Shown here in pieces: positions 2,982 through 23,285 of a stretch of DNA of 23,995 nucleotides. Location of the stretch: assembly GCA_010909165.1 (NCBI GenBank), contig VJWM01000390.1, positions 1 through 23,995 of the forward strand, read 5' to 3'. Origin of the DNA: Anthoceros angustus. Taxonomy: Eukaryota > Plantae > Anthocerotophyta. The position numbers and the translations under genes are program-made. The notes beneath the pieces were generated by a model. That model made no database searches and had not been told where the DNA came from. It was given only the letters and a program-made list of their open reading frames with translations. Each line of letters starts with the position of its first letter. Positions within the stretch are counted from its first letter, which is position 1.

Positions 2982-3109
2982 GTTTCAATTCCTTTTGGTT
3001 TTCGACGTCTACTCAATGGCTTTGCCGCAACTTTGGGCGGTACTTAAAAGCGGCCTTTATGTGTCGGCTGCCGCAGGAGCCGACATAGCCGGTTGCCCGA
3101 ACTTTTCAC

Positions 3110-3387
3110 CATGAACGATTAGGTCGACAAGGCTAGACCTACAAAGCTCCCAACAGGCAGTTGTAAGACGTGTGCATTCAAGGAGGTCAACCTACGATAT
3201 ATCGTAGCTTTTCGACTAAGGAAGGGTCATGGAAAACCGCGGTGGGGCGAGAGAAGGACTCGAAATTTCCCGAGTTTCACAACAGCTCGTGCTGATAATC
3301 AATTGCTTTAACGCCTTCAATAGCAATATATCTTCCTGAAGGCGGTTCGATAATTGTCCGTTGTTCTCCACATCAGTGTATGATCGC
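3110..3387. repeat. Module M0 (most diverged copy of the ~240 bp att-like module)
   Basis: Right end 3342-3374 is 32/33 identical to M3 15175-15207. Perfect palindrome CTACGATATATCGTAG at 3192-3207. Degenerate left end. Confidence 0.8.
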
Positions 3388-3650
3388 TAATGTCGGAAAC
3401 AAAGAACACAAAAGGATTGCTTACATCGCTTAACTGCCTACAATCGACGAAGGCGACCTGCGATGTATGGTAGATATCTGGATTAAAAAGTTGCCCGGCA
3501 GCGGGGGCTGATAGGCTATTGGAGGACAATTACTACAGAGCTAATCAGTAATTTCTTTGATTATCAATGCAGGAAGTTGGTTGGAAGGCCTATGTCTTCA
3601 TCTAGGCGGTTCAATAATTTTCCACCGTTATCCCCATCAGGGTACGACTC
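3377..3650. repeat. Module M1
   Basis: Left end TAATGTCGGAAAC..., CTGCCTACAATCGA, CTGCGATGTATGGTAG (3458-3473), TTGATTATCAATG, right end GGTTCAA-16-TC-11-ACGACTC. Confidence 0.9.
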
Positions 3651-3675
3651 AATTCGTATCGTAAAAAATGTATTA

Positions 3676-3698
3676 AATACCGTTAGTAATACGGTATT
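3676..3698. promoter_or_regulatory. Inverted repeat AATACCGT-N7-ACGGTATT, possible operator
   Basis: Perfect 8 bp inverted repeat just upstream of the first RHS-locus gene. Function is inferred from position only. Confidence 0.3.
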
Positions 3699-3703
3699 GA
3701 AGT

Positions 3704-5125
3704 ATGGACCGACTTCTTCAATTTTAATACACCAAAACGAAACCTTATCAAACTGCTTCCCTTTCAAATCACCCTTTTTTTCTTCTGGTTACCGGAACGC
3801 TATCGGCACAAGAAGGTAGTCGTTTGGATACGGCACTTGCCGTACAGGAAATGGCTGGCAGGTTTGCAACAGAAGGCGGAAAAAGCCCACCGCAACCTAG
3901 AAAAGGCTACAGACGGGTATTTAACGCGGTTGCAGCGGAGGGAGGAAAAGCTCAAGCGAAAACTTTGGAAGAAGGACTCTGCAGAAGCCAACCGGGTGTT
4001 CGGTGATGTCGCGGCTCGGTACGATGGGCTTAAATCTACTTCAGGAGGTTCGTCCTTATCAATCTCTTTATTCTGGGCACTGGACTCTATCACTACCTCG
4101 TTGTCGTTTATTCAGCGGGCCGGCAATGCCGATTCTTCACTTACATTGAACCAGTACAAGACGCTCCGGGGCGCTTTAACTCCTCCTCCCGGGTCCGACG
4201 GCAGCTTCAGGAACGGCAGCGGCATTTAAAAGCCGAATTGGAAAAGCTGGGGATGGTACAGGCGCTCCGCGGGCTCCAAAAGACGTTTATTACTACTCAG
4301 CGCAGGTACAACAGCTAAAGTCGGATCTGGAGCATCCAGACCGTCTGGCCCAGCGGCTAATTAATCTGGCCATGAAGCAGCCGTCGTTCCGGGCCTTTTC
4401 CGTAAGTACTCGCTTTTGGGAACACTGTTTGCCCTGCAGTGAATCGCCTGACCCAGCGTCGTTGGCTGGTTTGCAGACCCGGTCGTCCATCTGCTCCAAA
4501 CGCAGTTTGGTCAGGGCTCAGGAGTAACTTCCGCGCTCCAACAAAACATGGGTGCGGCACAAAGTCAGTTGGCAACCCTCCGAAGCCGAGCACAAGGTCT
4601 TCAGACCGGTAGCTGGCAAAATGGGGATGCGGAAGCTCCTTCTTTTAAGCCCAATACGCAGAAGACCCGGTCGTTTCTGGACCGGCTGGAGCTGGGCTTC
4701 AATGTCCAGTCCCAACGAGCACGGTACTTTCCCGGTGACCTCCGACGGCGTTCTCCTTGGGCTATAAGTTGAACGACCGGTCGATTCTAGGCATCAGCGC
4801 CTCCTATAAGATAGGCTGGGGCAGGAGCTGGGAAGCGCTGTCCGTTACCCATCAAGGCATTGGCCTTCGCAGTTACTTGGATTGGAAGATCAAGGACCAG
4901 ATCTACGCGACTGGCGGATATGAGCTGAACTACCGACATGCGATCAAAATGTGGACCAGTTAAAGGATTTTTCTGCGGCAATCATCTGGACTTATTGGGC
5001 TATCCAAGCGCTACAAGCTGGGCAAAGTGAATGGCGAAATGAAGCTGATGTGGGACTTCCTCAGTCATCGGCAGGTGCCCAGAACGCAAACATTTGTCTA
5101 CCGGATCGGATATCAAATAAAATAA
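3704..5125 (+). CDS. Exported protein: coiled-coil N-terminus plus beta-strand-rich (putative outer-membrane barrel) C-terminus; first gene of the RHS locus
   Basis: Signal peptide ...FFLLVTGTLSA/Q; helical LQQKAEKAHRNLEK...REEKLKRKLWKKDS; C-part RLELGFNVQSQ...SLGYKLNDRSILGISASYKIGWG...GIGLRSYLDWKIK...YATGGYELNY...FVYRIGYQIK*. Many frameshifts. Confidence 0.7.
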
Positions 5126-5148
5126 GGACTAAAACAGGATTACTACAT

Positions 5149-8100
5149 ATGATTCGAAAATTGCATGTCTTGGTTGTGTTTCTTGGATTTCTGGGGCAAT
5201 ATGCAAGCGCGCAGGCGGAATTGAAGAACATTACACCATTGAGTCCAAATGCAGCTGCAATCGAACGCTACGGCGAGGTACCAGTGAGTTATTTCACGGT
5301 ATCCCAAACATTTCGATACCGCTTTATACGGTGAGTGGACGTTCCCTTCAGTTGCCGCTCAGTTTATCGTACCATGCCGGCGGCAACAAAGTTGAGGACA
5401 ATGCCTCATGGGTAGGACTTGGCTGGTCGCTCAATTCATTGCCGGTGATTAATCGGTCTATCCGCGGGCTTGCAGATGAGGGAGTAGGTGGGTTTTCTCT
5501 GGAAGTCCGGTAAAACAAGTTTACGATAATCGATTTACGACAAGTGGACAAAGTGACTACAATAACTTTCTATGGGACGTTCGTAACGGTAATGTGGATC
5601 CGGAAGCGGACATACATATAGTCTACTTGGAAAAGCGGGAAGTTCTTTTTCAATCAATCCACTCAGAACTTTCAAACTACACCATATGATAATATCAAAA
5701 TAGAATGGCTAGGAAATGGCTTTAGAATAACAAACGATGATGGCGTTGTCTACAATTTCACTATTTCCGAATCGACAGTCAATAATTCAAATTTAAGTGA
5801 GTCGATTGGGTCTTGGTGGGTAACGAAAATCATTAACGCTAATAAAACCGATAGCATTCTTATAGATTATAACATTGAGGTGGAGTCTTACACCACTGTC
5901 CCCTCAGTTACCAAAGTATTTTTATCAGTGGTGATGGTAATTGTGTCCCAAATCCGAATACACTAGCCTACCAAGCAGTTGTATCAAATTTATCCGTTTC
6001 ATCCGTCAAACCCAATCGAATAACCTTTCATAACGGCTATGTTCAGTTCGTGCCGCAAACAACTGTGCGACCCGACCTAACCGGAAGTCACGCGCTAGAT
6101 CGGGTAGACATCTTTAATTACCGAAATGAACTGGTGAAACGATTAAAACTCTTGAAACGGTTGATGGTGGTTGCGGTACCGCGGACTGCAAGCGGATTTT
6201 CCTGAAATCCGTGGAACAGCATGATCCGGTAGGTATCGTTGGCGCCGTGTATTCTTTGCAATATGAGGACGGTATCGCTGTTCCAAGTAGGCTGTCTAAA
6301 GCGCAAGATTATTGGGGATACCATAATGGCCAAAATCAAAACCAAGACTTGGTACCGAGCATATTTTATCAATATTCCGGCACTGACAAACGCAAGCTAC
6401 GAGCAGATAGGAGTGTGAATCCTCAATTTACCCAATGGGGTGTTTTGAAGCGTCTAACCTATCCGACCGGGGTGCCACTTTGTTTGAGTATGAGAACAAC
6501 TGGGTCAGCGACTCGTCGCTTCCCATTAAGACAAGGATACTTCTGATTTATTACAATGGGGTGAGTCAAGGTAGTCACGCTGTATATGAACGATACTTTA
6601 CAGTGGATGTGCCGCTGATCCCGATATAAACGATAATCAAGGGAGCTTATGCTGATATTCAAATCAGCAACATCGGATGCGACTTGAGTGGGGAGCCAAT
6701 CTCTGCGCCAACCATCACAGTGGGTACGAACTATGGTTCTGGGTCCATTTTGGGAAATATATCAGGTCTGTATATTCCTAATGGTACGTACAAGATGACA
6801 GCTGAGTTCAATCAAGATCCGGCTGCGTACACCTATTTTAATTTTTGGTTTCTTGGAAAAAGCCGATAGTGCTTATGTCTCCAATCGTCTTGCGGGTGGG
6901 CTGAGGATAAAGAAGATAACGAATTTGGACAATGTGACGGACGTAAATTCCGTCCAGAGTTCAAATATGTAGAGGATCCGGTATCTAATGTGTCATCCGG
7001 AAAGGTACTCGGAGCCGCGTATTTCAACTTCGCTGAGCATTTTATGTATAAAAGTATGAATTGGTACAGATGGGTTCCTCAGAGTAGTAATAGTCTGTAA
7101 CTCCCAATGGCTACGACGCACGTCGACTTCTAATATTACTACAGTAAATTCCTCTGGAAGTTTTGTTGGTTATCGGATGGTTGAAGTGCTACAGGGTATT
7201 GGAGGAGTCAACGGAAGTCGCGTTTCGAGTTTATGCTAAATAAAGACCAAGTTAGTACTTCGTTTCCTTATCCACCCCGCATTCTCGTGAGCAAAGAAGG
7301 GACAGCTACTGATGCAATCCGACTTTCGAAAAGCTGGCTCTGCGTTTATCCCAGTACGGCGGCTAACTAACTCTTACGCACTGCATTATAACTCTGTTAT
7401 CGGTGCACCTTCCTATGGTTTGAAGATAGCAACGAAGGATATTTATGGCAAAATAGGATTTTCCCGCAGCAATTGGCTTACCTCAATGATGTGCCTGTAC
7501 AGTATGTTTCGGAATATGACACGCAGACTGATTTGTCCTTGCTAAAACTTACGAAAAGGTCTATAGTTCATCAGATACAAATTCTGTATTGATAACCACT
7601 AAAGAATATACCTATCAAAGTCCAACGGCGTATTTGAGCCGAGGCTAAAGCCTATCAGAGTAATGGGAAGATTACAACAACTGATTATTTCTATCCAAGC
7701 GATTTGGCTTTAACTGGTGACGCGGAAGTGGCCGGGCTGAAGTTGGTTACTAAAAATCAGTTGTCAGAGGCGATTCGCACAGTAGATAAGGTAGGCACTA
7801 CACAGATAAAGGCCCTGCAGAAAGATTTTAAAGCACTTACGTCCACCCAGGTTGAGCCGGTGAGCATTCAGGTGCAAACGGAAAGTGGCCCCAATGAGGT
7901 GCGTGTCCAATTCAGGCTTCGATCAAAGCGGTAATCTTCAAGAGCAATATAAATCAGGAGACATTCACCAATCTTATATCTACGATTACAATCGTTCCTA
8001 TCCGATCGCCGAGGTTTTAAATGCAGATAGCTCTTCAGTTGCCTATACATCTTTCGAGGCGGAAGGAAACGGAGGCTGGTAGAATTCCGCCCGCAAATGT

Positions 8101-9086
8101 CCAGTACTTTGGTGGCGTCGCAGGAAGCAGATTTTCATTGGTAATAGCTTCTCAATAAGCAAATCTTCTTTAAGCGCTTCGACAACGTATGTTGTTAGCT
8201 ACTGGACGAAGAACCCGGCTGCATATTCGGTTAGTGGCACAATGTCCGGTTGGCCTAAGTTATTGAATTCAGTTTGCGGTTGGAGGATACTTGGCGCCTG
8301 TTTGAGCATCAGGTAGTTGGGCAAACTACAATTTCAGTGACCGGGTCAGGTTCACTTGATGAGTTGCAGCTCTTCCCAAAAGGAGCCATGATGACTACGT
8401 ATGCTTTTCAGCCGTTGGTGGGTATGACCGTTCAGGTGGACCCGAAAATCAAATTTCTTATTTTACTTACGACGGATTTGGTCGATTATTGTTGATAAAG
8501 GATCAGAAAGGAAATATACTGAAGAAAAACTGCTATGGTTATGCAGGCCAGCAGGCAAGCTGTGAATTGGTCGGTAATGCGGCACAGTCTCAGTCGTTCT
8601 CTAGTACTTGTCCAGCAGGATTTGCTGGTGGCGGTGCAGTATTCGGTCCCTGCGAATACATATTATGCAGCTACACAAGCAGAGGCAAATCTTCGAGCCC
8701 AGCTGATTTGAATGCTAATGGGCAATCGTACGCAAACTCCCATGCGACATGTGCCGACCTCGATATATGCGCGGCTGTCGTTGGAGAATATGGCTTTCAA
8801 CGGGTCCACAACAACAGCAGACGTAGTCGTGCGTTTCTATTCGGATGCAGCCGGAACTAATCCCATTAGTGTTAGTGGTTTGTCTTTGAGTTATCAAAGT
8901 GCCAATTCTTGCGGAGGAACCAATAATTATGGGCAGTCTTGTACGGGTTCTAGTAAGATACTTATAAGCGGAGCGACTGTCTCATATGACGATTATACAT
9001 TTGACGAGTGGAACAATATGGTGGTGACCACGTGCACCATTAATTACCAACTTAATTCTTCTCAAAACTACACCATTATTAACTAG
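5149..9086 (+). CDS. Large secreted YD/RHS-associated protein with TcB/SpvB-like N-terminus and C-terminal DUF5977
   Basis: Signal peptide MIRKLHVLVVFLGFLGQYASA/Q; PLSPNAAAIERYGEVPVSYFTGIPNISIPLY...LPLSLSYHAGG...VGLGWSL; LKRLTYPTG; TTYAFQPLVGMT...YDGFGRLLLIKDQKGNILKK; DUF5977-type ...ADLNANGQSYANSHATC; terminal beta-rich domain ending NYTIIN*. Confidence 0.75.
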
Positions 9087-9093
9087 ACTTACC

Positions 9094-9487
9094 ATGTATC
9101 GAGTTATAGCACTCTTACTTGGAATTATTTCCATTTCAGTCCCCTTGTCTGCTAAGTCCCAAAGTCAAGCTGCAGCCGGGCAAATAGGAGTCGCAACTGT
9201 TATCGAAGGAATTGACGTTGGATAGTTCACAAAGAGAAGCGGTCAAGACTAGAGCTTTAATTTACTATCAGCGGGTAGATTCCGTAAATAGTCAAATTGC
9301 GGACACGGCTATGAGGCGCCAGTTGCTTAGGTCCTCATTACAGCACTATCGTATGCAATTGCAAAACGTGTTGACTGAATCCCAGTTCACGGCTTATCGC
9401 GCCTTTATTCTTCAACGGAAGGAGTTGACAAGACAGCGACTGATGCAGCAAGGTGTACCCATTTCGGAACTTCCTGATGACTTCTAA
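9094..9487 (+). CDS. Small secreted helical protein
   Basis: Signal-like MYRVIALLLGIISISVPLSAKS/Q; one indel joins it to track ORF 9212..9487 (LTLDSSQREAVK...LQNVLTESQFTAY). Confidence 0.7.
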
Positions 9488-9495
9488 CTCATAGT

Positions 9496-12400
9496 ATGAA
9501 ATCAAAATATTTATGCCTCCGTTGGCCATTGCTGCCCATGTTGATGCTCTGTTGGACATGTGCTTTAGCGCAGCATCCATCGAGCTATCCTTCCTATGTG
9601 CAGGTCAATTTTGTGCGTAGCTGGGATAGCAAAGCTCCGCAGACAGACCCCAATAAAATTGTTTCACAGGCATCAATCGATAGTTTTTGATCACTACCCA
9701 ATATATAGACGGATTGGGTCGGCCGGTCCAAACAGTAGCTCGTCAGGCTACACCTCTGGGCCAAGACTTGGTGACGGCCATTGTCTGACGCCTTCGGGCG
9801 GGAAGCCCAAAAGTACTTACCCTTTGCAGCTAATGGCGCAGGGGTAATGCTTCGCTTGCTGATGGTACCTTTAAATTAAACCCTTCCAGCAGGCCGAAGC
9901 TTTTGCCACTACGCAGTACCGGGAGAGCCACATATATGGAAAGACACTGTTTGAGGCCTCGCCCGAGTCGGCCGCTGACTGTTTATGCGCCGGGCGATAA
10001 TTGGGCTGGAGTGAACAGAGGTGTCTCCAGGCTTATTTGATAAACACGGCTGCCGATGAGGTTCGGATCTGGAATGCGGGTTTGCAGGCATCCGACGTGC
10101 CAACGACAACAGCGATATATCCGGCAGGAGCATTGTACAAAAGTCTTGCAACGGATGAGTCGGGAAACGCCGTTATTGAGTATAAGGACAAGTCGGGTCA
10201 GGTAGTGCTGAAGAAAGTACAGGTGGGAGCGACGCCATCGGAAGGACATGGGGCTGGGCATGTACGTACTATATATATGATGATCTGGGCCGGCTTCGGT
10301 TTGTGCTGCAACCCAAAGCCGTTGAGATGTTAGTCAGTAGCAGAAGCTGGACGATCACTAGTGATATCCGCAATGGACTATGTTTTTACTATGGCTACGA
10401 TAGTAGGGGCGTATGACGATCAAAAAGTGCCTGATGCCGGCGAGGTATATATGGTTTATGACGCCCGCGACCGGCTGGTTTTAAGCCGGGATGCCAAGTT
10501 AAGGGTAGATGGAAAATGGATGGTAACCCTGTATGACGGGTTGAACCGACCCATAATGACAGGCCTTGCTGCCTCAGCCAGCCTCGGCTCCAAAACCTTC
10601 GGCCAGCATCTGATCGATGCCGCAGGTTCTTCGGCCTATCCCTTTACGGCTAGCAACGTGCCGTCGTCTGGCTGGGAAGAGCTGACCCAGACGGGCTACG
10701 ATGATTATGCGGGTGCCCGTCCGGTGCGCCGAGCTCGGTCTTCGGACACGACGCAGGTCACGAGCGCGAACTTTTTACCAACCACAATGCGGCTCCTTTT
10801 TTGTCCCCATGCGGTGGAGGCCAGCGCATGTACCCGCGGCCTGCCTACGGGCCGCGTAAAGGTCTTACTACTACCTCCACCTATCTGTATACCACCGATC
10901 TATGACGAAAGGGGCGAGAGATCCGGTAAAAGCACCAATATCACTGGTGGCACCGATGAGCTCACCCAGCAGTATGACTTTACCGGTAAGGTTCTCCGGA
11001 CCCACGGCGCACCCGGGGCGGTGGCACCCCAGAGACCTACCAGACCGGCGCGCAGTCACTATGATCCGGTGGGCCGGCCTACGGATCGCACGCCGGGTCA
11101 CGGGTGGCGGTATTACCGATACCACTTCGAAAGTCACTGTTGCGATGGCGTATGATGAGTTGGGACAATTGAAGCTCAAAAGCTGGCGCCATACTTTGTA
11201 ACGGGCCGGTCTGGAATCCTTGACCTACGAGTACAACATCCGGGGCTGGTTGTTGGGTATGAACCGCGCGTATGCCAAATCAGCTTCTTCGACCACCAAC
11301 TATTTTGGTTTTGAGCTGGGCTATGACAAAGCCTCAATCACCCCTTCAGGCGGTTCGTCCATCGGAAACTTCACCACACCGCAGTACAATGGCAATATTG
11401 CGGGGCGGTTTGGAAGTCAACCGGCGACGATCAGATTAGAAAATACGACTATACCTACGACCGGATGAACCGGCTTACCGGGGATTTAACCAGTTTACCG
11501 GTTCGGGGTTCAATAAAGATGCGGGCACGGACTTCAGTGTAAGTGGGGAACAGGGGCAAATTACTTACGATATCAACGGCAATATCCTGCGGATGAAGCA
11601 AATGGGCTGGAAAATAGCGGGTGGCACCGTGCCGATGGATATATGCTGTACGAATATGTACCCAACTCCAACCAGCTGAAATCCGTGACGGAGGCTTCCG
11701 GAAGCATCAGAGTACAAAATGGGTGATTTTACCGATAAATACACCGGAACCGATGGTGATTATGTCTATGACGTCAACGGCAGCATGACCGTGGATCGAA
11801 ACAAGAACATCAGTAGCATTGCTTATAATCACCTGAATCTGCCTTCGCAAATTGAGGTGACGGGCAAAGGAACGATCACCTACCTATGATGCGGCCAGCA
11901 CCAAACTTCGTAAGACGGTGGTAGAGGGCACTACGACCACCACCACCACTATATAGGCGGGTTTATGTACGAGGAAAAAGGCACCTCGGGTCCCGTTTTT
12001 ACAGTCCTTCGGTCATGAAGAAGGCCGGGTGCGGCCGCGTAGTCCTGCTACTGGTCAACTCACGGGTTTTGCCTATGACTACTTCGTAAAAGATCACACA
12101 GGTAATGTACGGATGACGCTGACCGACGAGCAGAAAACCGATACCTACAGCCACGATGGAAGAAAGTGCGGTGCGGTCGAAAATGCGCTCTTTGCCAATG
12201 TAGACCTCACCCGAGACGGTATCCCAATGGTTACGTTGCAGATACGGACGGCGAGTGGTTCAAAAGTCTCCAAACTTAATGGCTCTGGTCATAAAGTAGG
12301 GCCTGCTGTACTTCTCAAGGTCATGGCCGGTGATATCGTTAATATGCGGGCCTACAGCTGGTATACAACGCCTTCTCAAACGTTCGACCAGCCGGTCTCG

Positions 12401-13773
12401 CCGTTACAGGACCTGCTCAGCTTGCTAAATACGTCCGTTAGTTCGGCTTCAGGCGGTAAAAGCAACCGTTGCCGATCTGGCCAGTGGCGGCAATCTGCTG
12501 ACTGGGCCTATAACAACGTTCCTGTCCGGCAACCGACTCCCGCCTCGACTCCGAAAGCTTATATGGCTCCTCGATGAGCAGTTCAAGCTTGTACAAGACG
12601 GTCCGTCCAGTTCCTCGCCTGTTGGTGCAGCAGGATCAACCACCCATCAGGTGAATGGTGTTACCATGCCCAAATCCGGATACCTGTACGTGTACGGCCA
12701 ACGAAACCCCGGTCAGGACGTATTTTTGACAACTTGCAGGTAGACCATATCCGTGGGCCAATTATTGATGAAACTCACTATTATCCTTTCGGGTTACCAA
12801 TGGCAGGATAAGTTCTAAAGCGGCGGGAAATTTAGAGAACAAACTAAAATATATTGGAAAAGAGGAACAGCGGCAGGAGTTTAGCGATGGCAGTGGGTTG
12901 GAGTGGCTGGATTATGGCGCACGGATGTATGACAACCAGATAGGAAGATGGATGGTATTAGACTCAAAAAGCGAAGCCTATTATTCGAGTTCTCCTTTCA
13001 ATTATGCCCTGAATAACCCGATAGCAAACTTTGACCCTAATGGCAAATGGTCTGTATCACGTCACCACACTATGACGGTAATGGCCTTATCTTCCGCTGG
13101 TATTGGCGTGGTACACAAGCTTATTGGATTGCTCACTATAGTGCAGTCTATGCAGATAATCCCGGAAATCATTTAATGCTTAACAATCTTGTTCATCCTA
13201 CAAGAGGAGACATTTATCGCAGGAAATAGATTACTCTTTACAAAGAACTCCCAAGTAACCGATTATCCCAATTATCATGGTTATAATTTCAATGTTTGGC
13301 ATTCAATGCGTTCCCCACAGGAAAAACAAAGGTTCGAGAGCGGAACAATAGGTGGAATATCTGCGGAAGGGGCGATGCAAAGGGCATGGAGTTCGGATGG
13401 GGTGAGGTATTTTCAGCAGCTAAATCTGGTACTAAACTGGCTGATCTTAAAAGAATACTTGGCAAATCCAATCTTTGGGACAAGGTTTGCATGCTCTTCA
13501 GGATGCCTATGCGCATCATGGCGGCATGACGTTGGGTTCGACCATGTGTACACCGATATATTTACAAGCAATAGAAAAGCGGAGGCGATTACAAGTTCTG
13601 CAGTTGCTGTTTATGCTCTTTTGACTAAAGACTATTCAGCAATAGATAAGATGATGGAAGCAAATAAAGGTAGCCTTGGATTTATATCAACTGAAGGGAT
13701 GTCCACGCAGCAAATAACTCAAATCTTTACAGCTATTCAAAATTACCTAACAGACCATAAGCCAAAGCGTTAA
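9496..13773 (+). CDS. DUF6443 / RHS repeat-associated core polymorphic toxin
   Basis: Signal peptide ...WTCALA/Q; DUF6443 (VNFVRSWD...[13 protein letters not shown]...YDAFGRE); YD repeats ([32 protein letters not shown]); KDHTGNVRM; core ETHYYPFG...[16 protein letters not shown]...[17 protein letters not shown]; ~240 aa C-terminal toxin domain. Confidence 0.9.
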
Positions 13774-14158
13774 TGAATAAAAACTCCTATTCTACATATA
13801 TGCTGGCTGCCTTGTTGGTGTCGGAGTGTTTCTGTTTGTATTGTACGGCGCTTGGGGCACGATTTTAATTTTGAGGAAGCTGCATCTTTAGAATACTTTC
13901 TATTTTCTGCTTCTTTTCTAATAACAAGTCTGCTACTTCTAATCACAAGCTTTTTGCCGAGGTGGAAAGCGGTTTATGTGGTTATGAAATTTTTTTGTTT
14001 CTTATTTTTGTCTTTTGTTATTCCTATTAGGAAAACTTTTTATTTTCTTTTTGAGAAAGGCGGCACTTGGCCTGTTCTGGTTGTACTAAGCATTTTACTA
14101 TTACTGATGTATCAAACAACCCGGTATTTTTTTCAAAAGAGTTTTGGCCTCAGAATAA
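13773..14158 (+). CDS. Putative immunity protein, multi-pass membrane
   Basis: ATG overlaps the toxin stop (TAATG 13771-13775); very AT-rich; about four hydrophobic segments. The track ORF runs to 14199 through the terminator, so a stop at 14156-14158 after an indel is more likely. Confidence 0.7.
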
Positions 14159-14159
14159 C

Positions 14160-14188
14160 AAAGCCGCTCAGTGAGCGGCTTCTTTTTA
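14160..14188. terminator. Bidirectional intrinsic terminator
   Basis: AAGCCGCTCA-G-TGAGCGGCTT (14161-14181) with T-rich tails on both strands, between convergent stops. Confidence 0.8.
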
Positions 14189-14312
14189 TGGCGCAATGAG
14201 GTTTTGCAGGTTGTCCTTTAGTTTTTGTTGGAGATGGCCATATCAATCATGGTAAAGATGGCCTGTTGTTCGGTTTTGCCTAAAGTGTCAATCATTTTAA
14301 TTTTTCCAGCGT
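14186..14312 (-). pseudogene. C-terminal remnant of an XRE-type regulator, cut at module M2
   Basis: TLEKLKMIDTLGKTEQQAIFTMIDMAISNK(K)LKDNLQNLIAP* resembles the C-terminal helices of Bacteroidota XRE proteins as I recall them. No HTH part is present. Confidence 0.6.
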
Positions 14313-14580
14313 ATCGTCGATAATGTCGGTAACGGCGAACAAACAAAACTATCGCAGACATTGCTAGCCTGCCCACAATTGAGGAAGCCGACCTACGATG
14401 TATCGTAGATTTCTGAATAAATAGTCGCCCTGCAGCCATGTGGCTTGTAGACTACTAAAGCTCTGCAGAACTCATCAATAATTTCGTTGATTGTCAATGA
14501 TATAAGCTGGTTAGAAGCTCAAGGACTTCTACCACGCGTTTCGATAATCGTCCGCTGTACTCCACATCAGTGCATAATAT
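14310..14580. repeat. Module M2
   Basis: TAATGTCGGTAAC...; CTACGATGTATCGTAG 14393-14408; TTGATTGTCAATG; right end GTTTCGA-16-TC-CACATCAG. First 90 bp about 78% identical to M3 by hand alignment. Confidence 0.9.
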
Positions 14581-14597
14581 TTTTCTTTCCCTTTCGC

Positions 14598-14873
14598 TTA
14601 TACGGCAGCAGCCCGCAATGTGAAAATCGATCCGACTTGAGATTCAACGCTCAAAATTGAGAGACTTGTATTCATTCCAAAAAGTAAATAATTTGAAATC
14701 AGCTCTAATTCGCGTTCGCTTGCTTCCGACCCGGTGCTTGCACGTATAGCCAACCTTTCCAACTCATTTTCGGGAATCAGCTCGACTTGCAAAAGCAAAT
14801 ATGGCGAAGTCATTGTACGTGTATTCAGTATTCTATGTTTCACTTGAAGTTTTGTTTTTATTGTATTTGTCAA
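14598..14873 (-). CDS. Hypothetical protein, 91 aa; sole cargo between M2 and M3
   Basis: Uninterrupted track ORF filling most of the ~370 bp inter-module gap. No family recognised. Confidence 0.5.
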   Translation of the reverse strand: MTNTIKTKLQVKHRILNTRTMTSPYLLLQVELIPENELERLAIRASTGSEASERELELISNYLLFGMNTSLSILSVESQVGSIFTLRAAAV

Positions 14874-14949
14874 TCTATCTCAAACATTGGACCCTTTCGG
14901 TGCTCAACAGGACAAATTCTTAGATAGTTAACCCTTTCGCTGATCAAAG

Positions 14950-15219
14950 GGTATGATCAATAATGTCGGTAACGAAGAACAAAAAACGATCGCTTCCGTT
15001 GCTCACCTGCCTACAATCGATAGGACCGACACGATGTATCGTAGATTCTCGAAAAGTAGCCCGGCGCATACACGTTAGAACCGACGCACAGAGCGCAAGG
15101 AGCGTGGGGTTTCGTAGCATATTATTTGATTATCAATGTATTAAGATCATTAACAGCTCCAAGTCGTCGCGCATGCGGTTCGATAATTGTCCGTCGTTCT
15201 CCACATCTGCGCGCATACA
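14950..15219. repeat. Module M3
   Basis: GGTATGA-11-GG-16-ACGATCG left end; ACGATGTATCGT; TTGATTATCAATG; right end GGTTCGA-16-TC-CACATC. Confidence 0.9.
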
Positions 15220-15553
15220 CTTGGATTATCTGATAGATATTTTGATACTTATCCAAATGGGAAACGCGTATCTCACCTTACAGTACTGAGTTTGTAGGCG
15301 ACGTTATGGGTACAGGCCGAACAATGAAGACATCTCAAGCACATTGGAATAATTGGGGTAAGTTCATATTAAAGCAAAGCGAAAGTAAATTTATAATTAA
15401 GACAATTGTTGATCGTCCGGATGCGTCTGAATACGAGAAAACTAAAAACTATTTTAATGGCTAGGTATTTAATTATCATCTATAATACTCCCTTTATTGA
15501 GACCAAAAGGTCAGGATGCTAAGTTAATAATGGGGTTTGTTTCTTCTGTGTTT

Positions 15554-16382
15554 TTAATGGATACGAGGGTTGTTTTCTGTTGGTATCGTTCGTTTGGTTT
15601 TGCTCGTGGTGCTGTGGATCTTTTGGTTGTAGTAGGCCATGTATCGATCGATGCCTTCTGCGAGCTCACCACCATCTTCAGCAGGGTTCAGGTATACGTG
15701 GTCATACTTGGAGTGACTTCCAGAACCGCTCGATCCAGATGTTATCCGTTGCCCGTCCTTTTCCATCCATGGATATCTGTATTTCGTTTCGCTCCGTACT
15801 GCGTCCAGCCGGCACAAGTGTATTGCACGCCCTGATCCGAGTTGATGATCTCTGGTTTTCCATGCACCGCAATAGCTGTCTCCAGCACTTCCAGCACCAG
15901 CGCGCGGCCAGCGAGTTGGAGATGCCCCAGCCCACGATCTTGCGGCTATACACGTCTATGATGGCCGTCAGGTACATAAAGCCTCTGCGCATCGGGATGT
16001 ACGTAATGTCCGTGCACCAAACTGGTTGGGCCGGGCAACATCGAGTCCCCGCAGCAGGTACGGTTTGATAAATGCCCGGAAGCCCATTTTGGTGAGGTTC
16101 CTTCTACGGTAAATGGTCTGGTGTCCCATGAGGCGGAAGAGCTGCCGGATCCGCTTAGCCCACCGGATGGCCCTCGTCGCGCAACAGGCGCACCACGGAA
16201 ACACACCCTCGGTGGGGTGCTCCAGCAGATGACGGTCCATGAGCTGCATCATTTTGAGGTTCTCCGGCTTTTCTGCGCGGGGTTTGTAATAGATCTTGCT
16301 GCGGTTCACGGCGAGCAGTTCGCACTGCCGGCGCACCGATAGCTTTTGGAACGGGCTGTACCAGAGACGCACGTGTCGTCAG
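15554..16382 (-). CDS. IS3 transposase OrfB (DDE integrase core)
   Basis: [82 protein letters not shown]. Confidence 0.92.
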
Positions 16383-16660
16383 ATCCCCAGCTTGCAACTT
16401 TTTTAAAAATTCATTTTCCACCTTGAGTTGTCCGATCTGGGCATACAGCTCGCGGGTGTCTACGGACTCGCCTTCGGCATCCGAGGACTTTTCAAAGGCA
16501 GCACTCATGTTTTCCGAATTCAGACTTCCAGCGAGAATCATCACGGCCGAGACTTCAAATTTCTTCGACAGCTCGGCGAGGGTTTGCTGGTTCTTTACGG
16601 CTTCAAGTGCCACCTTGGCTTTGAACGCGGGACTGAATTTGGTGGGGTTTGCTTCTTCAT
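16379..16660 (-). CDS. IS3 transposase OrfA (HTH)
   Basis: MKKQNPTKFSPAFKAKVALEAVKNQQTLAELSKKFEVSAVMI...ELYAQIGQLKVENEFLKK. Confidence 0.9.
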
Positions 16661-16727
16661 TTTGAGGTAGTTAAAAGTACATCCTTTCTTAACTTAACCT
16701 CTGGTCTGAATTTCAGGGAGCATTATA

Positions 16728-19051: not shown

Positions 19052-22000
19052 TCATTTATCTTGTGCTATGGGTAAATAAACTTTAAATGTTGCTCCTTCA
19101 CCGGTTTTCCTTCAGCCTCAATTTTCCCGCCATGACGTTCAGCAATTTTTTGTAAAGAGAAAGGCCGAGGCCCGATCCTCATATTCATCTTTTGAATGCA
19201 GGCGCATAAAGGTTTGAAAAATAAAGTCTGCCTTGTTTTTATCAAAACCAATTCCATTGTCCTGAACCGTTATCAAAGCAAATTGCTTGCCGGTGTTACC
19301 ATCATTTTCCAAGACAACCTCACCAGTTATAATAATGACCGGCGGTACATTTTCTTAGAAAACTTTAATGCATTATTGATGAGGTTGTAAAATAGCTGGT
19401 GAAGCAATCGAGGCACCTTCCACGGTCGGCAAATTGTTGTACTTGATTACTGCCTTTTTTGAGCAATGGTAATTTCAAGGTCTGTCTCCACATGCTGAAG
19501 CACGCCTGAGAGGTGAACGGCTTCAGTTAGCAACGATTTCTTAGCATCGAGAGCTGAATACTCAAAACCCCATCAATCATATCGTAACTGCGGGTGGGTG
19601 GCAGCCCTGTCAATCTTCGATACATATAGTTTTGCCTTTTCTGGCAGGGCCGCTGAAAACTCATGCTCCGTGCGGCTGACGAATGTTTTATCTTACGTAC
19701 AGGCTCTTTCAAATCGTGTGAAGCCACATGAGCAAAATGTTGCAAATCTTCGTTGCTACGCTGCAACTCTTTGGTGCGTTCAGCAACCAACTCTTCTAAT
19801 CGTTCTGCTACGTTCTTTTGGTCATGTATGCGTCAAGTGCCAAACCACCGTATAATCTCATTGGCCTCATTGCGAAAAGGTGTGGCTCTTGCCAACAGCC
19901 AACGCAGTATTGCCCATCACTCCGGCGCATACGGTATTCTATCTCATAATAGTCCCGGTGTCGTGGGAATGTTCAAACTTTCCATGTACGGTCATAATCA
20001 TCCGGTGCAGTAATTTAGACCATCCTCGGCCTTCGTTTCTTCATACGTCATGCCGGTGAATTCAAACCAACGCTGGTTGTAAAATCATGGTAGCCATCCG
20101 GCTTTGCCCACACCATTTGCGGCATAAAGTCGGCGAGTTGCCGAAGTTGTTCTTCGCTCTGCCTTAATGCCTGTTCTGCCTCCCGTTCTTTTGTTGTATC
20201 CGACATAACGCCGATAAAACGGTGTTTCTCACCACGATTGTTAGGTGCACCGGCCAATAGAACGAACCCAGCGAACAAGGCCGCCATCTATTATGCGAAA
20301 CTCGGCGTGATAGCTTGTGAGCTATCACTGTCAAACAGTAGTTTTGCAGTTCATTTCTCCACCGTGCTCTGTCATCGGGATGGATAGAAGATAAAAATCG
20401 TTCAAACGTAAAATCTTCATCAGGGCTCGTTTTCAAATCTGGAGCGGTTAGATATGACAGTCTTGTCTGTTTGGATATTGTAATCCCATAACCCAAAGCT
20501 TGCTGCATCAATGGCTGTGCTGAGCTGCTACTTTCCTGCAGGGCATTTTCCGCTTTTACGCTGGCTAATGTCCTGCAGAGCCCAACATGCGAGTGGATTT
20601 GCTCGGCATTGTGCAGAACAAAGCCACGATCAAATATCTGTTTATACGACCCGTTGCGGCATCGAAACTGGTATTCTTCTGTCCGTATCTCCGCCTCGTC
20701 AATAACTTTATGAATGCCGTACCACCCGCTCCCGGTCGTCAGGTGAATACGGTCGTACCACCAACTTGCAGTTTCATCAACTTCATCGTATGCGTAATCG
20801 AACATTTGATAAAGCGCCTCATTCCAAACGATGGTATCTTTTTCCAGTGTCCCAATCCCAAATAGCATCCTGAGTTGCCTTGTTAATTAACTGAAATCGT
20901 TCAATGCTTTCACGCAGTATCTCTTGCCTCTTTTTCTTCGGTTGTTTCTCTTACTTCAATGATGGTTCCTACACCTTTCCTGTCCACTATAATAGGCTTG
21001 CTGTAAAGCCACCGGAAAGAAACTGCCATCTTTACGGACAAATACTTCTTCACTGGTTTGTTTATGGGCAGCAAAGCCCTCTATTGGGCATTCTTCAAGC
21101 GGAAAATGAGTGCCGTCGGATGGGTATGGTGGACGTAATAGTGAAGGGCTTGCCGGTGACTTCCTCTAATTTGAAACCCGTCATTTGTTCTGCCGCCTCG
21201 TTCATGTGTAAACACAATATTGCCGGTCGTCCATCATAAACAAGGCTGACGTCGTATTTTCCGTTACTGTCTCTAAAAGTTGTTTTGGTAGGCGAGTGCC
21301 CTTTCCACTTTAGCGAAGTATCGGTGCAACTGGTAAAAACTTTATTATGGATCCATCCTCATTTACAAGCGGTTCCGAACGGTAAGCAGCCAAAAGGAAT
21401 GGCCGTCTTTTTCGACGTAAAATGCATTACCACTTCGGAAGGTTTGCCGGTGGTGGTGATGGACGAGCAGGTATTTTCAGGAGGTAGCGGGTTGCCATTT
21501 TCATCCGTTATAAGAAAAGTCTCGTCCAGCTTTTTCCGGAAGGTATAAATGTCTTTCTCAGCCAGTACCGCTTCAACGGAATCTAAACCCATTTGCAGTG
21601 CAGCTAATTGGTTCAAGCTAATGATGTTGCCCTTGTTGTCTAACTGGTAGATGGCGGATGGCACATGCTGCAATGTGATTTCCAACCCGGTTTGCAGCTC
21701 GTCCAATTTTTGGTTTACTTTAATGCTATTGGTAATGTCTCTTGATACGGAGATGAGGCGCATATTTTCCGACCCACCCCGTCTCTGGCGTAACCACGAC
21801 ATCCCACCATTTGGGTGTTCCTTTGGCAGTTGGGCAAAAGGCCTGAAAACGGGCCGTTTCACCAGCAGAGGCTGTTTGCACCGATTGTCGTACTATTTCC
21901 TGATATTCCTCGGGCCAGAGTTCCCACCAAAATTTCAGCTTTACAGTTTCTGAGATTTTCGATTTCCAATGTACACCGCCCATTTTCGTTCATGTACAAC

Positions 22001-22510
22001 AGTTTGCCGTCTCTTCCCAAAATCTTCACGCAATCGGGGCTGCTTTCGAGCGTAGAATGATTAAATGCTTCACTTTTGCAAGAGCCTCTGGCAACAATTT
22101 CTGAAGTAATTTCCTTTCCGGAAATTAGTACCTGCTGAACAGCCTGCTTCACGTTTTATCGGGATAAAGCTAAAATTGTAAATCGAAGAGTCATCTTGAC
22201 CATTGGGTGACCTCAATGAAATCTCAGTAAGCGTTTGCTCATTTCCGGTTAGAGAGCATAAACGAATACGATTTAAAATATCCTGTTGTACAGATGAGGA
22301 AAAAATCGGAAAAAATTAAACGAAACCTTTGGGTGTGCTCAACACCAAGTAATGAAAGCGTTTTGTGTTTGCAAACAACACATTCAGGCTTTCGCATTCA
22401 ATAATAACTATCGGGTACGGTAATAAATCAAAAATAGCAGCGTCCGTAGTATAAGAGTGGCTCAACGCACTCTCTGAAACGCCGTTGTTTCGGTCGGTAG
22501 TTATTTTCAT
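19052..22510 (-). CDS. Multi-PAS/PAC sensor histidine kinase (HisKA + HATPase_c)
   Basis: Several PAS repeats (LESSPDCVKILGRDGKLLYMN, WYDRIHPDD, SSIHPDD, LADFMPQMVW); H-box [39 protein letters not shown]. Confidence 0.88.
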
Positions 22511-22678
22511 GTTTTGTATTCAACAAACGGAATAAGCAAAAATAATAAAAGGAAAAACTGACCTGTAACCCCCTCCCCACCTATGACACATGAAATTTCG
22601 AAAGGTTCAGAAATAATGTATCAAGATCTCTCACAGCATAGTCTATATCAAAAACTTGTTGCACTTGCTAAAATCAGG

Positions 22679-23285
22679 CTAGCCTGCCGGCAAAACACGG
22701 TAAATCTTGCACCTTTTCCTTCCTGTGCTTCGGCATAAATATGACCATAGTGCCGCTCCACAATTCTTTTACACAAAGATAACCTGAGGCCGGTTCCTCA
22801 AATTTATCTTTTGCATGTAAGCGGGTGAATGTTTGGAAGATGGTTTCTGCATACGCGTCAAACCCAATTCCATTGTCCTCCACGATGATCTTTACAAATT
22901 TTATATCTTGCAACTTCAAATCCCTTGTTTTCCAATTGAAACTGACTCTGTTTGCAGGCTGACTAACAAAGGTGTTTCCGGCTTTGAAAATTTCAGTGAG
23001 TTGCTAAGTAAGTTATAAAAAGCTGATGGATCAATACGAAAGAACCATAAACGGGCAACAAATTGTGATACTCTATAATGGCTTTTTGGCCGATAGCCAT
23101 TTCTAAATCTTCTTCAATTGTTTGAAGTAGTTTATTCAGGTCAATACGTTCTTTGGCTATTTCGTCACCATCGATCAGAGAGTATTTCAGTGCATCCCGT
23201 CAATCATTGTGCAGGAACTGGAAACATCAATTTTTGAAATGTAATTAATGGCTTTATCAGGCAAACTTTCTGCAAACCTGCCTTT
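22679..23285 (-). pseudogene. C-terminal half of a second histidine kinase (HATPase_c, no H-box)
   Basis: FAESLPDKAINYISKIDVSS...MIDG..KYS...IHQLFYNLLSNSLKFS...VEDNGIGFD...[33 protein letters not shown]...GKGARFTVFLP. Confidence 0.75.

Follow-up and report, generated by a model that had tools for sequence, protein, structure and literature searches.

Four short blocks that loosely resemble the 3′ end of a transfer RNA (tRNA) recur on one strand of contig VJWM01000390.1 in the Anthoceros angustus (Anthocerotophyta) assembly GCA_010909165.1, and the question raised by this locus is what kind of site these blocks belong to. The window, i.e., the whole stretch of DNA analysed here, comprises 23,995 nucleotides (positions 1 to 23,995 of the forward strand). 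The blocks follow the pattern G(G/T)TTC(G/A)A-16 nt-TC-C(A/C)CATC, and the initial annotation regarded them as 3′ mimics of tRNA-Ala and, at the same time, as hybrid attachment (att) sites of a large serine integrase. Sequence reading and an exact pattern search bear out the four sites, all of which lie on the plus strand with their TC at positions 3367, 3631, 14561, and 15200; no further site is found in the window, and the exact pattern gives no match in 100 shuffles. These four sites are the final 31 nt of four copies of one direct repeat of approximately 262 nt, and because all of them belong to one repeat family, they count as one event and not as four. The 16-nt spacing common to the four sites shows only one indel-free block in that family, and it is unlikely to be an assembly error because it is identical in four copies, despite the noisy assembly. 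The repeat itself is present as four old, diverged copies of a non-coding unit with sharp ends, and these copies are located at the boundaries of gene modules.

The four units, referred to as c1 to c4 (Table 1), are 260–265 nt long and are all oriented along the strand of an operon for an RHS-repeat polymorphic toxin, and pairwise identity among them is 53–69%. They are contained within 12 kb, the remaining 12 kb of the window holds none, and no extra or partial copy was found in the window. Units c1 and c2 are joined directly, without a spacer, and the end of c2 is followed after approximately 190 nt by the first homology to the first gene of the operon; c3 and c4 sit on either side of a module of 379 nt, such that the units bracket both the frameshift-ridden toxin operon and this module. 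Based on segment-wise identity, the conserved parts of the unit are the left approximately 110 columns and the right approximately 87 columns, with the right end 70–96% identical. Between copies, the arms are 63–96% identical versus 31–51% for the centre, a segment of approximately 80 nt that is unrelated in sequence between copies and is kept at a length of 79–85 nt. Each unit carries a box twice in direct orientation, near the left end and within the right-end block, and once in inverted orientation, within a near-palindromic middle box; the left box is thus a direct repeat of the box in the right-end block. The distance from the middle box to the right box is fixed at 42–43 nt, and the spacing of the boxes is kept across copies. 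The strongest dyad of the unit is a 16-bp palindrome at approximately 85 nt from the left end. Each unit terminates in ...TCCACATC, and a short boundary motif, AGNG(Y)A, is found at the start of c2–c4 and again after the right ends of c1–c3.

Table 1. Positions of the repeat units, their internal features, and neighbouring genes in the window
Feature	Position	Strand	Remarks
Repeat unit c1	3110–3374	+	265 nt; left arm the most diverged of the four; right end abuts c2
Repeat unit c2	3375–3638	+	264 nt; head to tail with c1
Repeat unit c3	14308–14568	+	261 nt; 108 nt downstream of the likely immunity open reading frame (ORF)
Repeat unit c4	14948–15207	+	260 nt
Right-end block of c1	3344–3374	+	Stem, 12-nt TTCGA loop, stem, 7-nt strand; end T-C-C-A-C-A-T-C
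Right-end block of c2	3608–3638	+	Sequence reading, exact pattern search
Right-end block of c3	14538–14568	+	Sequence reading, exact pattern search
Right-end block of c4	15177–15207	+	Sequence reading, exact pattern search
Left box	c1 3116–3128; c2 3385–3396; c3 14318–14329; c4 14958–14969	+	CGATAATGTCGG in c3
16-bp palindrome	c1 3192–3207; c2 3458–3473; c3 14393–14408; c4 15029–15044	+	7+2+7
Variable centre	c1 3208–3292; c2 3474–3557; c3 14409–14487; c4 15045–15126	+	
Near-palindromic middle box	c1 3293–3302; c2 3558–3567; c3 14488–14497; c4 15127–15136	+	
First operon gene	3828–5122	+	Homologue of proteins of unknown function (approximately 472 aa) in Mucilaginibacter defluvii (L005) and in L007; at least three frame changes, one in-frame stop
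Large DUF5977 protein gene	5203–8569	+	At least four frame changes, up to two in-frame stops
DUF6443/RHS-repeat polymorphic toxin gene, C-terminal domain	9532–13773	+	5–6 frame changes, 6–12 in-frame stops
Hydrophobic ORF after the toxin gene	13852–14199	+	115 aa
379-nt module between c3 and c4	14569–14947		Sole ORF 91 aa, minus strand, matches no family
IS3-family insertion sequence	15499–16711	-	Broken; rve and HTH_Tnp_1 fragments, imperfect terminal inverted repeats

Because the arms are conserved against a saturated centre and the box spacing is kept, constraint on the arms is indicated. Together with the position of the units at module boundaries and the head-to-tail pair, this pattern suggests that the units are constrained sites that act as DNA. 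The same evidence bears on the proposal that an intergenic segment was duplicated locally and that its copies now decay as inert, functionless DNA. Such an origin would agree with a set of only four copies, all of them local and of low identity, for which no relatives were found; however, decay has been uneven, with a saturated centre beside a well-conserved right end, and neutral decay would not yield a pattern in which box spacing and unit length are both kept. We therefore regard inert duplication as quite unlikely.

The sharp ends also call to mind a selfish miniature element that lacks terminal inverted repeats, e.g., a non-autonomous element of the HUH (IS200/IS605) type. Size, sharp ends, non-coding character, and a head-to-tail pair are shared with miniature inverted-repeat transposable elements (MITEs) and with palindrome-associated elements derived from IS200/IS605, and all copies have a single orientation. 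Furthermore, AGNG recurs after the right ends and at the left ends, and insertion next to a short target that is re-created by the right end of the element itself would explain head-to-tail copies. Consistent terminal inverted repeats were rejected, since the best inverted match between the two ends of c1, c2, or c3 is no better than in shuffles, and c4 alone matches (15/20; 39/500 shuffles). Direct reading of the flanks reveals no target duplications, the flanking tetramers differing within each unit. The absence of both features would suit an HUH-type element with sharp ends, and it sets the unit apart from MITEs and IS200/IS605-derived elements. At neither end was a conserved subterminal hairpin found, the only strong hairpin of the unit being the 16-bp palindrome. 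The left flanks, on direct reading, share no fixed target of 4–5 nt, the window contains no gene for an HUH transposase, TnpB, or similar protein, and the copies are few, old, and clustered within 12 kb, not dispersed, with an identity of only 53–69%. Overall, a miniature element is an improbable explanation of the units.

Two further hairpins lie close to unit ends. A G+C-rich hairpin with an 8-bp stem is located at 3056–3087, just 5′ of the left end of c1, and no T-run follows it; a 7-bp hairpin at 14932–14952 spans the left boundary of c4, using the first five bases of this unit, and has no counterpart at c2 or c3. The variable centres were additionally considered as guides against nearby DNA and were rejected in this role, as their best matches, of 12 nt, are at chance level.

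The likeness of the right end to a tRNA can be stated in terms of its parts. The right-end block is parsed into a 5-nt stem strand, a loop starting with TTCGA, a second 5-nt stem strand, and a 7-nt strand ending in T-C-C, followed by A-C. With the exception of the loop, which exceeds that of a tRNA by 5 nt, this layout is that of a tRNA 3′ half with alanine-type positions 70–73: T70-C71-C72 with A73 is present in c1, c3, and c4, and the last position in c2 is C. Three to five pairs of the putative T-stem are formed across the copies. The loop measures 12 nt in all four copies versus 7 nt in tRNA, and no match with a 7-nt loop was obtained. A shortened search pattern, composed of the window’s own letters minus five loop positions, matched at least 80 viral contigs, and among the first 40 loci, 33 were at the 3′ end of a tRNA called by ARAGORN [Ala(UGC), 21; Tyr, 6; Ser, 5; Phe, 1]. 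This retrieval of tRNAs is largely built into the shortened pattern itself, and at the positions free of the pattern, the agreement with the retrieved tRNAs is at chance level. The pattern with the real spacing of the unit yielded three matches, which are taken as chance and none of which is related to the unit. A single viral contig (L090:2308-2334) has the GGTTCAATAAT...CC...GTTCTCCA spacing of the unit and nothing more of it, and this occurrence is taken as chance.

A descriptor fitted post hoc to the right end recurs in 1.8% of shuffled windows, and in 22% when the GG is omitted. Searches with ARAGORN and with the Rfam models of tRNA and transfer-messenger RNA (tmRNA), the latter with E up to 10 around the units, gave no match at the units, and the 3′ end of tmRNA fits the right end equally well as that of tRNA-Ala. 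Of the proposed mimicry of tRNA-Ala, the heptamer, the T-C-C-A-C end, and the tRNA-like layout survive; the 12-nt loop, the lack of a match to any tRNA model, and the recurrence in shuffled windows speak against it. On balance, the tRNA likeness of the right end is marginal and suggestive only.

The geometry of serine-integrase sites provides a further comparison. In attP and attB of large serine integrases, the crossover dinucleotide is flanked by half-sites related by two-fold symmetry, and attB has its zinc-ribbon motif 5 bp nearer the centre (PMC3783163). The right ends share with these sites a TC with a heptamer 16 nt to one side, which fits the attP zinc-ribbon position, and in c1 and c2 a heptamer also lies 11 nt 3′ of TC (ATGATCG at 3380 and ACGACTC at 3644), such that the distances of 16 and 11 nt match the positions of the zinc-ribbon half-sites in attP and attB, respectively (PMC3783163). 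On this numerical agreement, and on the tRNA-like motif in the right end, the initial annotation proposed that the right ends are hybrid attP/attB sites that cross over at TC and carry the zinc-ribbon motif with a 5-bp shift in a copy of the tRNA-Ala 3′ end. The positions of the two heptamers are correct; their supposed similarity to the motif across TC is not, because direct reading gives agreement with GGTTCGA in reverse complement at just 3/7 and 4/7 positions. Mirror matches about TC number 16/88 versus a background mean of 23.2 (standard deviation, 4.4), comparison of the outer motifs at shifts of 0, +5, and -5 gives 9, 11, and 13 of 44, all at background, and no inverted repeat (6-nt seed) occurs within 45 nt of any right end. 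Unlike att sites of large serine integrases, the right ends have no two-fold related half-sites and no inverted motif at any shift. They also lack the limit of 40–50 bp: conservation runs 6 nt beyond TC and continues, more weakly, for another 4–9 nt, and the conserved block belongs to a unit of approximately 260 nt and not to a site of 40–50 bp. Moreover, the 5 extra bases had been measured against tRNA and not between the half-sites of one att site.

The search for an enzyme points in the same direction. Broken genes were kept unrepaired and their pieces were searched separately. None of the window fragments of at least 70 aa matches Resolvase, Recombinase, or Zn_ribbon_recom, and Phage_integrase has no match among the window fragments in Pfam. 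In M. defluvii (L005, GCA_039543225.1), the homologous RHS operon is located on an island with a relaxase and a large serine recombinase of 539 aa, whose gene lies at the island end; there (L005:16816-19008), the 3′ end of the recombinase gene, as called, touches or runs into a bona fide tRNA-Pro(GGG) on the other strand (Rfam, 61 bits). A tblastn search of the window with this recombinase gave no match. Since the operon of M. defluvii is carried on an island with relaxase, recombinase, and tRNA-Pro, such operons travel on integrative elements, and the arrangement suggests that Sphingobacteriia have serine-recombinase islands linked to tRNA genes. Another 600 nt on, 28 nt of the 5′ part of this tRNA-Pro recur as a partial copy. 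Islands with a serine integrase are also known from a tRNA-Ala-like tmRNA end, the ssrA islands of Dehalococcoides using the serine integrase DsiB (PMC3146451, PMC4383910). These precedents speak for the serine-integrase proposal; nevertheless, given the failure of symmetry about TC at shifted and unshifted positions, the embedding of the sites in a much longer unit, and a window with no serine recombinase, we consider it very improbable. The broader notion of an att-like role fares differently from the serine-integrase geometry, and it remains plausible because the sharp unit ends lie at gene-module boundaries.

A further explanation assigns the unit an RNA role, either as a structured non-coding RNA or as a cis-acting leader of plus-strand genes; a multi-helix junction would then be built from the arms, and the centre would correspond to a hairpin domain whose variation is tolerated. 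Coding by the unit itself was rejected. The comparison of c2 with c4 gives 2 synonymous and 11 non-synonymous changes; one minus-strand frame is open across the right arm in all copies and its peptides look alike, the third-position excess of this frame is weak (57 vs. 39 and 44), and the left and right boxes lie in different reading frames, which counts against coding. The orientation of all units along the operon strand and the end of c2 shortly 5′ of the first operon gene would suit a leader. A common structure of the four units predicted by RNAalifold contains compensatory changes in 5/30 pairs versus 1.8 in shuffles (2/500), and 90% of its cells are paired versus 25–49% in slid controls, figures that are to be read with the fact that the pairs were tested on the very sequences, four in number, from which the structure itself had been obtained. 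The two ends of the unit can also pair with each other (9 pairs, 89% of cells), but this end-to-end helix is without covariation. By contrast, single-sequence folds of the units are no more stable than shuffles (z-scores of -1.2, -0.3, +2.5, and -0.5), and Rfam gives no match at gathering score in the whole window and, near the units, none of relevance with E as high as 10. The placement of the units is likewise not that of leaders throughout, as c1 precedes c2 and not a gene, and c3 precedes the 379-nt module, in which no convincing plus-strand gene is found. An RNA or leader function is therefore judged unlikely, without being as remote as a serine-integrase site.

The explanation that we tentatively prefer, and which we hold to be possible and still short of probable, is that the units are att-like junction modules and that the recombinase acting on them is encoded beyond the window. 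The units would then be lineage-specific, non-coding modules of approximately 262 bp that act as double-stranded DNA, with a left arm (box and 16-bp palindrome), a spacer of approximately 80 bp, and a right arm (middle box, 42–43 nt, and the left box repeated in direct orientation). The repeated boxes would be the binding sites of a site-specific recombinase whose gene lies elsewhere and which would link modules in head-to-tail order, and as a result one unit would remain per gene-module boundary, here those of the RHS toxin-immunity operon and the 379-bp module; in the loose tRNA likeness of the right end, a trace of a former tRNA or tmRNA target may persist. We infer protein binding, recombination, and the kind of enzyme at the units. 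A tyrosine integrase would suit a site of approximately 250 bp with repeated boxes better than a serine integrase. The attP of tyrosine integrases that bind arm sites (heterobivalent integrases), such as that of phage lambda, is approximately 240 bp long. By analogy, the unit resembles such an attP in size and in its short box copies, both direct and inverted, held at fixed spacing by spacers that are free in sequence; unlike attP, it has no inverted core sites flanking an overlap region at the unit boundary, and no integrase gene accompanies it.

Two other known systems share part of this arrangement. Tandem islands can be divided by repeats of the tRNA-Ala-like tmRNA 3′ end, and some of them lack an integrase (PMC3146451); the repeat in tandem tRNA/tmRNA islands is approximately 20 bp long and is an exact copy of the 3′ end of the functional gene at the head of the array (PMC3146451, PMC4383910). 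As in these islands, same-strand repeats at the present locus bound successive cargo modules of accessory genes, some modules are without a recombinase of their own, and the end of the repeat resembles an acceptor end of the tRNA-Ala type. The differences are considerable: the unit is approximately 262 bp long and only its last approximately 35 nt are tRNA-like, with the enlarged loop described above, the units are strongly diverged from one another, and the window contains no tRNA or tmRNA gene according to ARAGORN. The second comparison is with integron attC sites and with the intergenic repeats of Bacteroidales rAID-1 (bioRxiv 10.1101/471110), which are also diverged same-strand repeats between toxin/immunity modules in Bacteroidota. 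The rAID-1 criteria comprise a 5′ gene for a XerD-like tyrosine recombinase followed by at least two co-directional genes with a G+C content of at most 41% (10.1101/471110). In the window, neither a XerD-like nor an IntI gene is present, the G+C content is not low (40–54% across the region), and one of the modules is a 10.7-kb operon; in addition, the unit is far longer than attC and has none of the integron core motifs. An attC site folds into a hairpin through inverted boxes at its ends; the ends of the unit can pair, as noted above, but with no covariation.

Several results weigh against a role of the units as recombination sites served in trans. No inverted core-type symmetry is seen at the unit boundaries, and the boundary motif is just 4–6 nt long. 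The kept length of the spacer is unexplained by an origin as a deletion remnant, and the five compensatory pairs in the predicted fold favour a role as RNA or as single-stranded DNA. The window encodes neither a serine nor a tyrosine recombinase, and its only recombinase of any kind is an IS3 transposase. Relatives are equally lacking: the right-end pattern and the three-box pattern have no match in the genome, metagenome, and viral collections, blastn of the units against plasmids and phages found nothing, and nhmmer with unit profiles found nothing on the loci with homologous operons, around which no analogous flanking repeats were found either. Finally, all inferences about the units rest on four copies in a noisy assembly. 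A bolder form of the proposal, in which an undescribed platform for cassette assembly uses the units as its recombination sites, would comprise att-only modules of approximately 262 bp with a core derived from tRNA or tmRNA, an enlarged 12-nt loop, and a trans-encoded recombinase that strings them head to tail and captures polymorphic-toxin operons between them; it is decidedly doubtful at present.

The genes around the units are consistently damaged. All recognisable genes of the window are broken by frame changes and in-frame stops, e.g., those at 3828–13773 and 19142–23003, and the broken set includes the toxin operon, the IS3 element, the histidine kinases, and the DUF892 and DUF3891 genes. 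The longest ORF in the window has at most 273 codons under any reading of the stop codons; reassignment of stop codons was rejected, as no reassignment brings back long ORFs. The damage may reflect either an unpolished long-read assembly or a heavily pseudogenised genome. The operon between c2 and c3 is intact in relatives, where the RHS toxin has approximately 1450 aa. The ORF after the toxin gene is likely the immunity gene, as judged from its position only. The best protein identity is approximately 47%, to Mucilaginibacter and metagenome sequences, and the source of the DNA is therefore an unsampled lineage of Bacteroidota. One protein of the window was looked up as an exact match and is on no record. 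On a gut-metagenome contig (L001:8062-14809; also L002 and L003), an array of short co-directional ORFs directly follows dnaA and tRNA-Ser and begins with a C-terminal RHS fragment that shares 79% identity with a stretch of the toxin tail in the window; it looks like an orphan toxin/immunity array.

The left 3 kb of the window has no match in Pfam or NCBIfam. To the right of c4, the window contains the broken IS3 element, which is unrelated to the repeat units, fragments of DUF892 and DUF3891 genes, and two PAS histidine-kinase genes. The IS3 element sits between c4 and the DUF892 fragment, whose profile match begins at position 76, and its insertion may have split the DUF892 gene. A 43-nt direct repeat (77%) at 19242–19284 and 22858–22900 lies within two minus-strand HATPase_c fragments and indicates two paralogous sensor kinase genes side by side.

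The significance of the locus depends on which of these explanations holds. The numerical fit to serine-integrase geometry vanished on symmetry testing, and if the units are merely a local repeat family, the value of the present analysis is mainly corrective, in that four pattern matches come down to one repeat in four copies. Should the units prove to be recombination sites, they would differ from those of integrons or of the usual tRNA-targeted islands and would reveal how a poorly sampled lineage of Bacteroidota collects and exchanges large RHS toxin-immunity operons.

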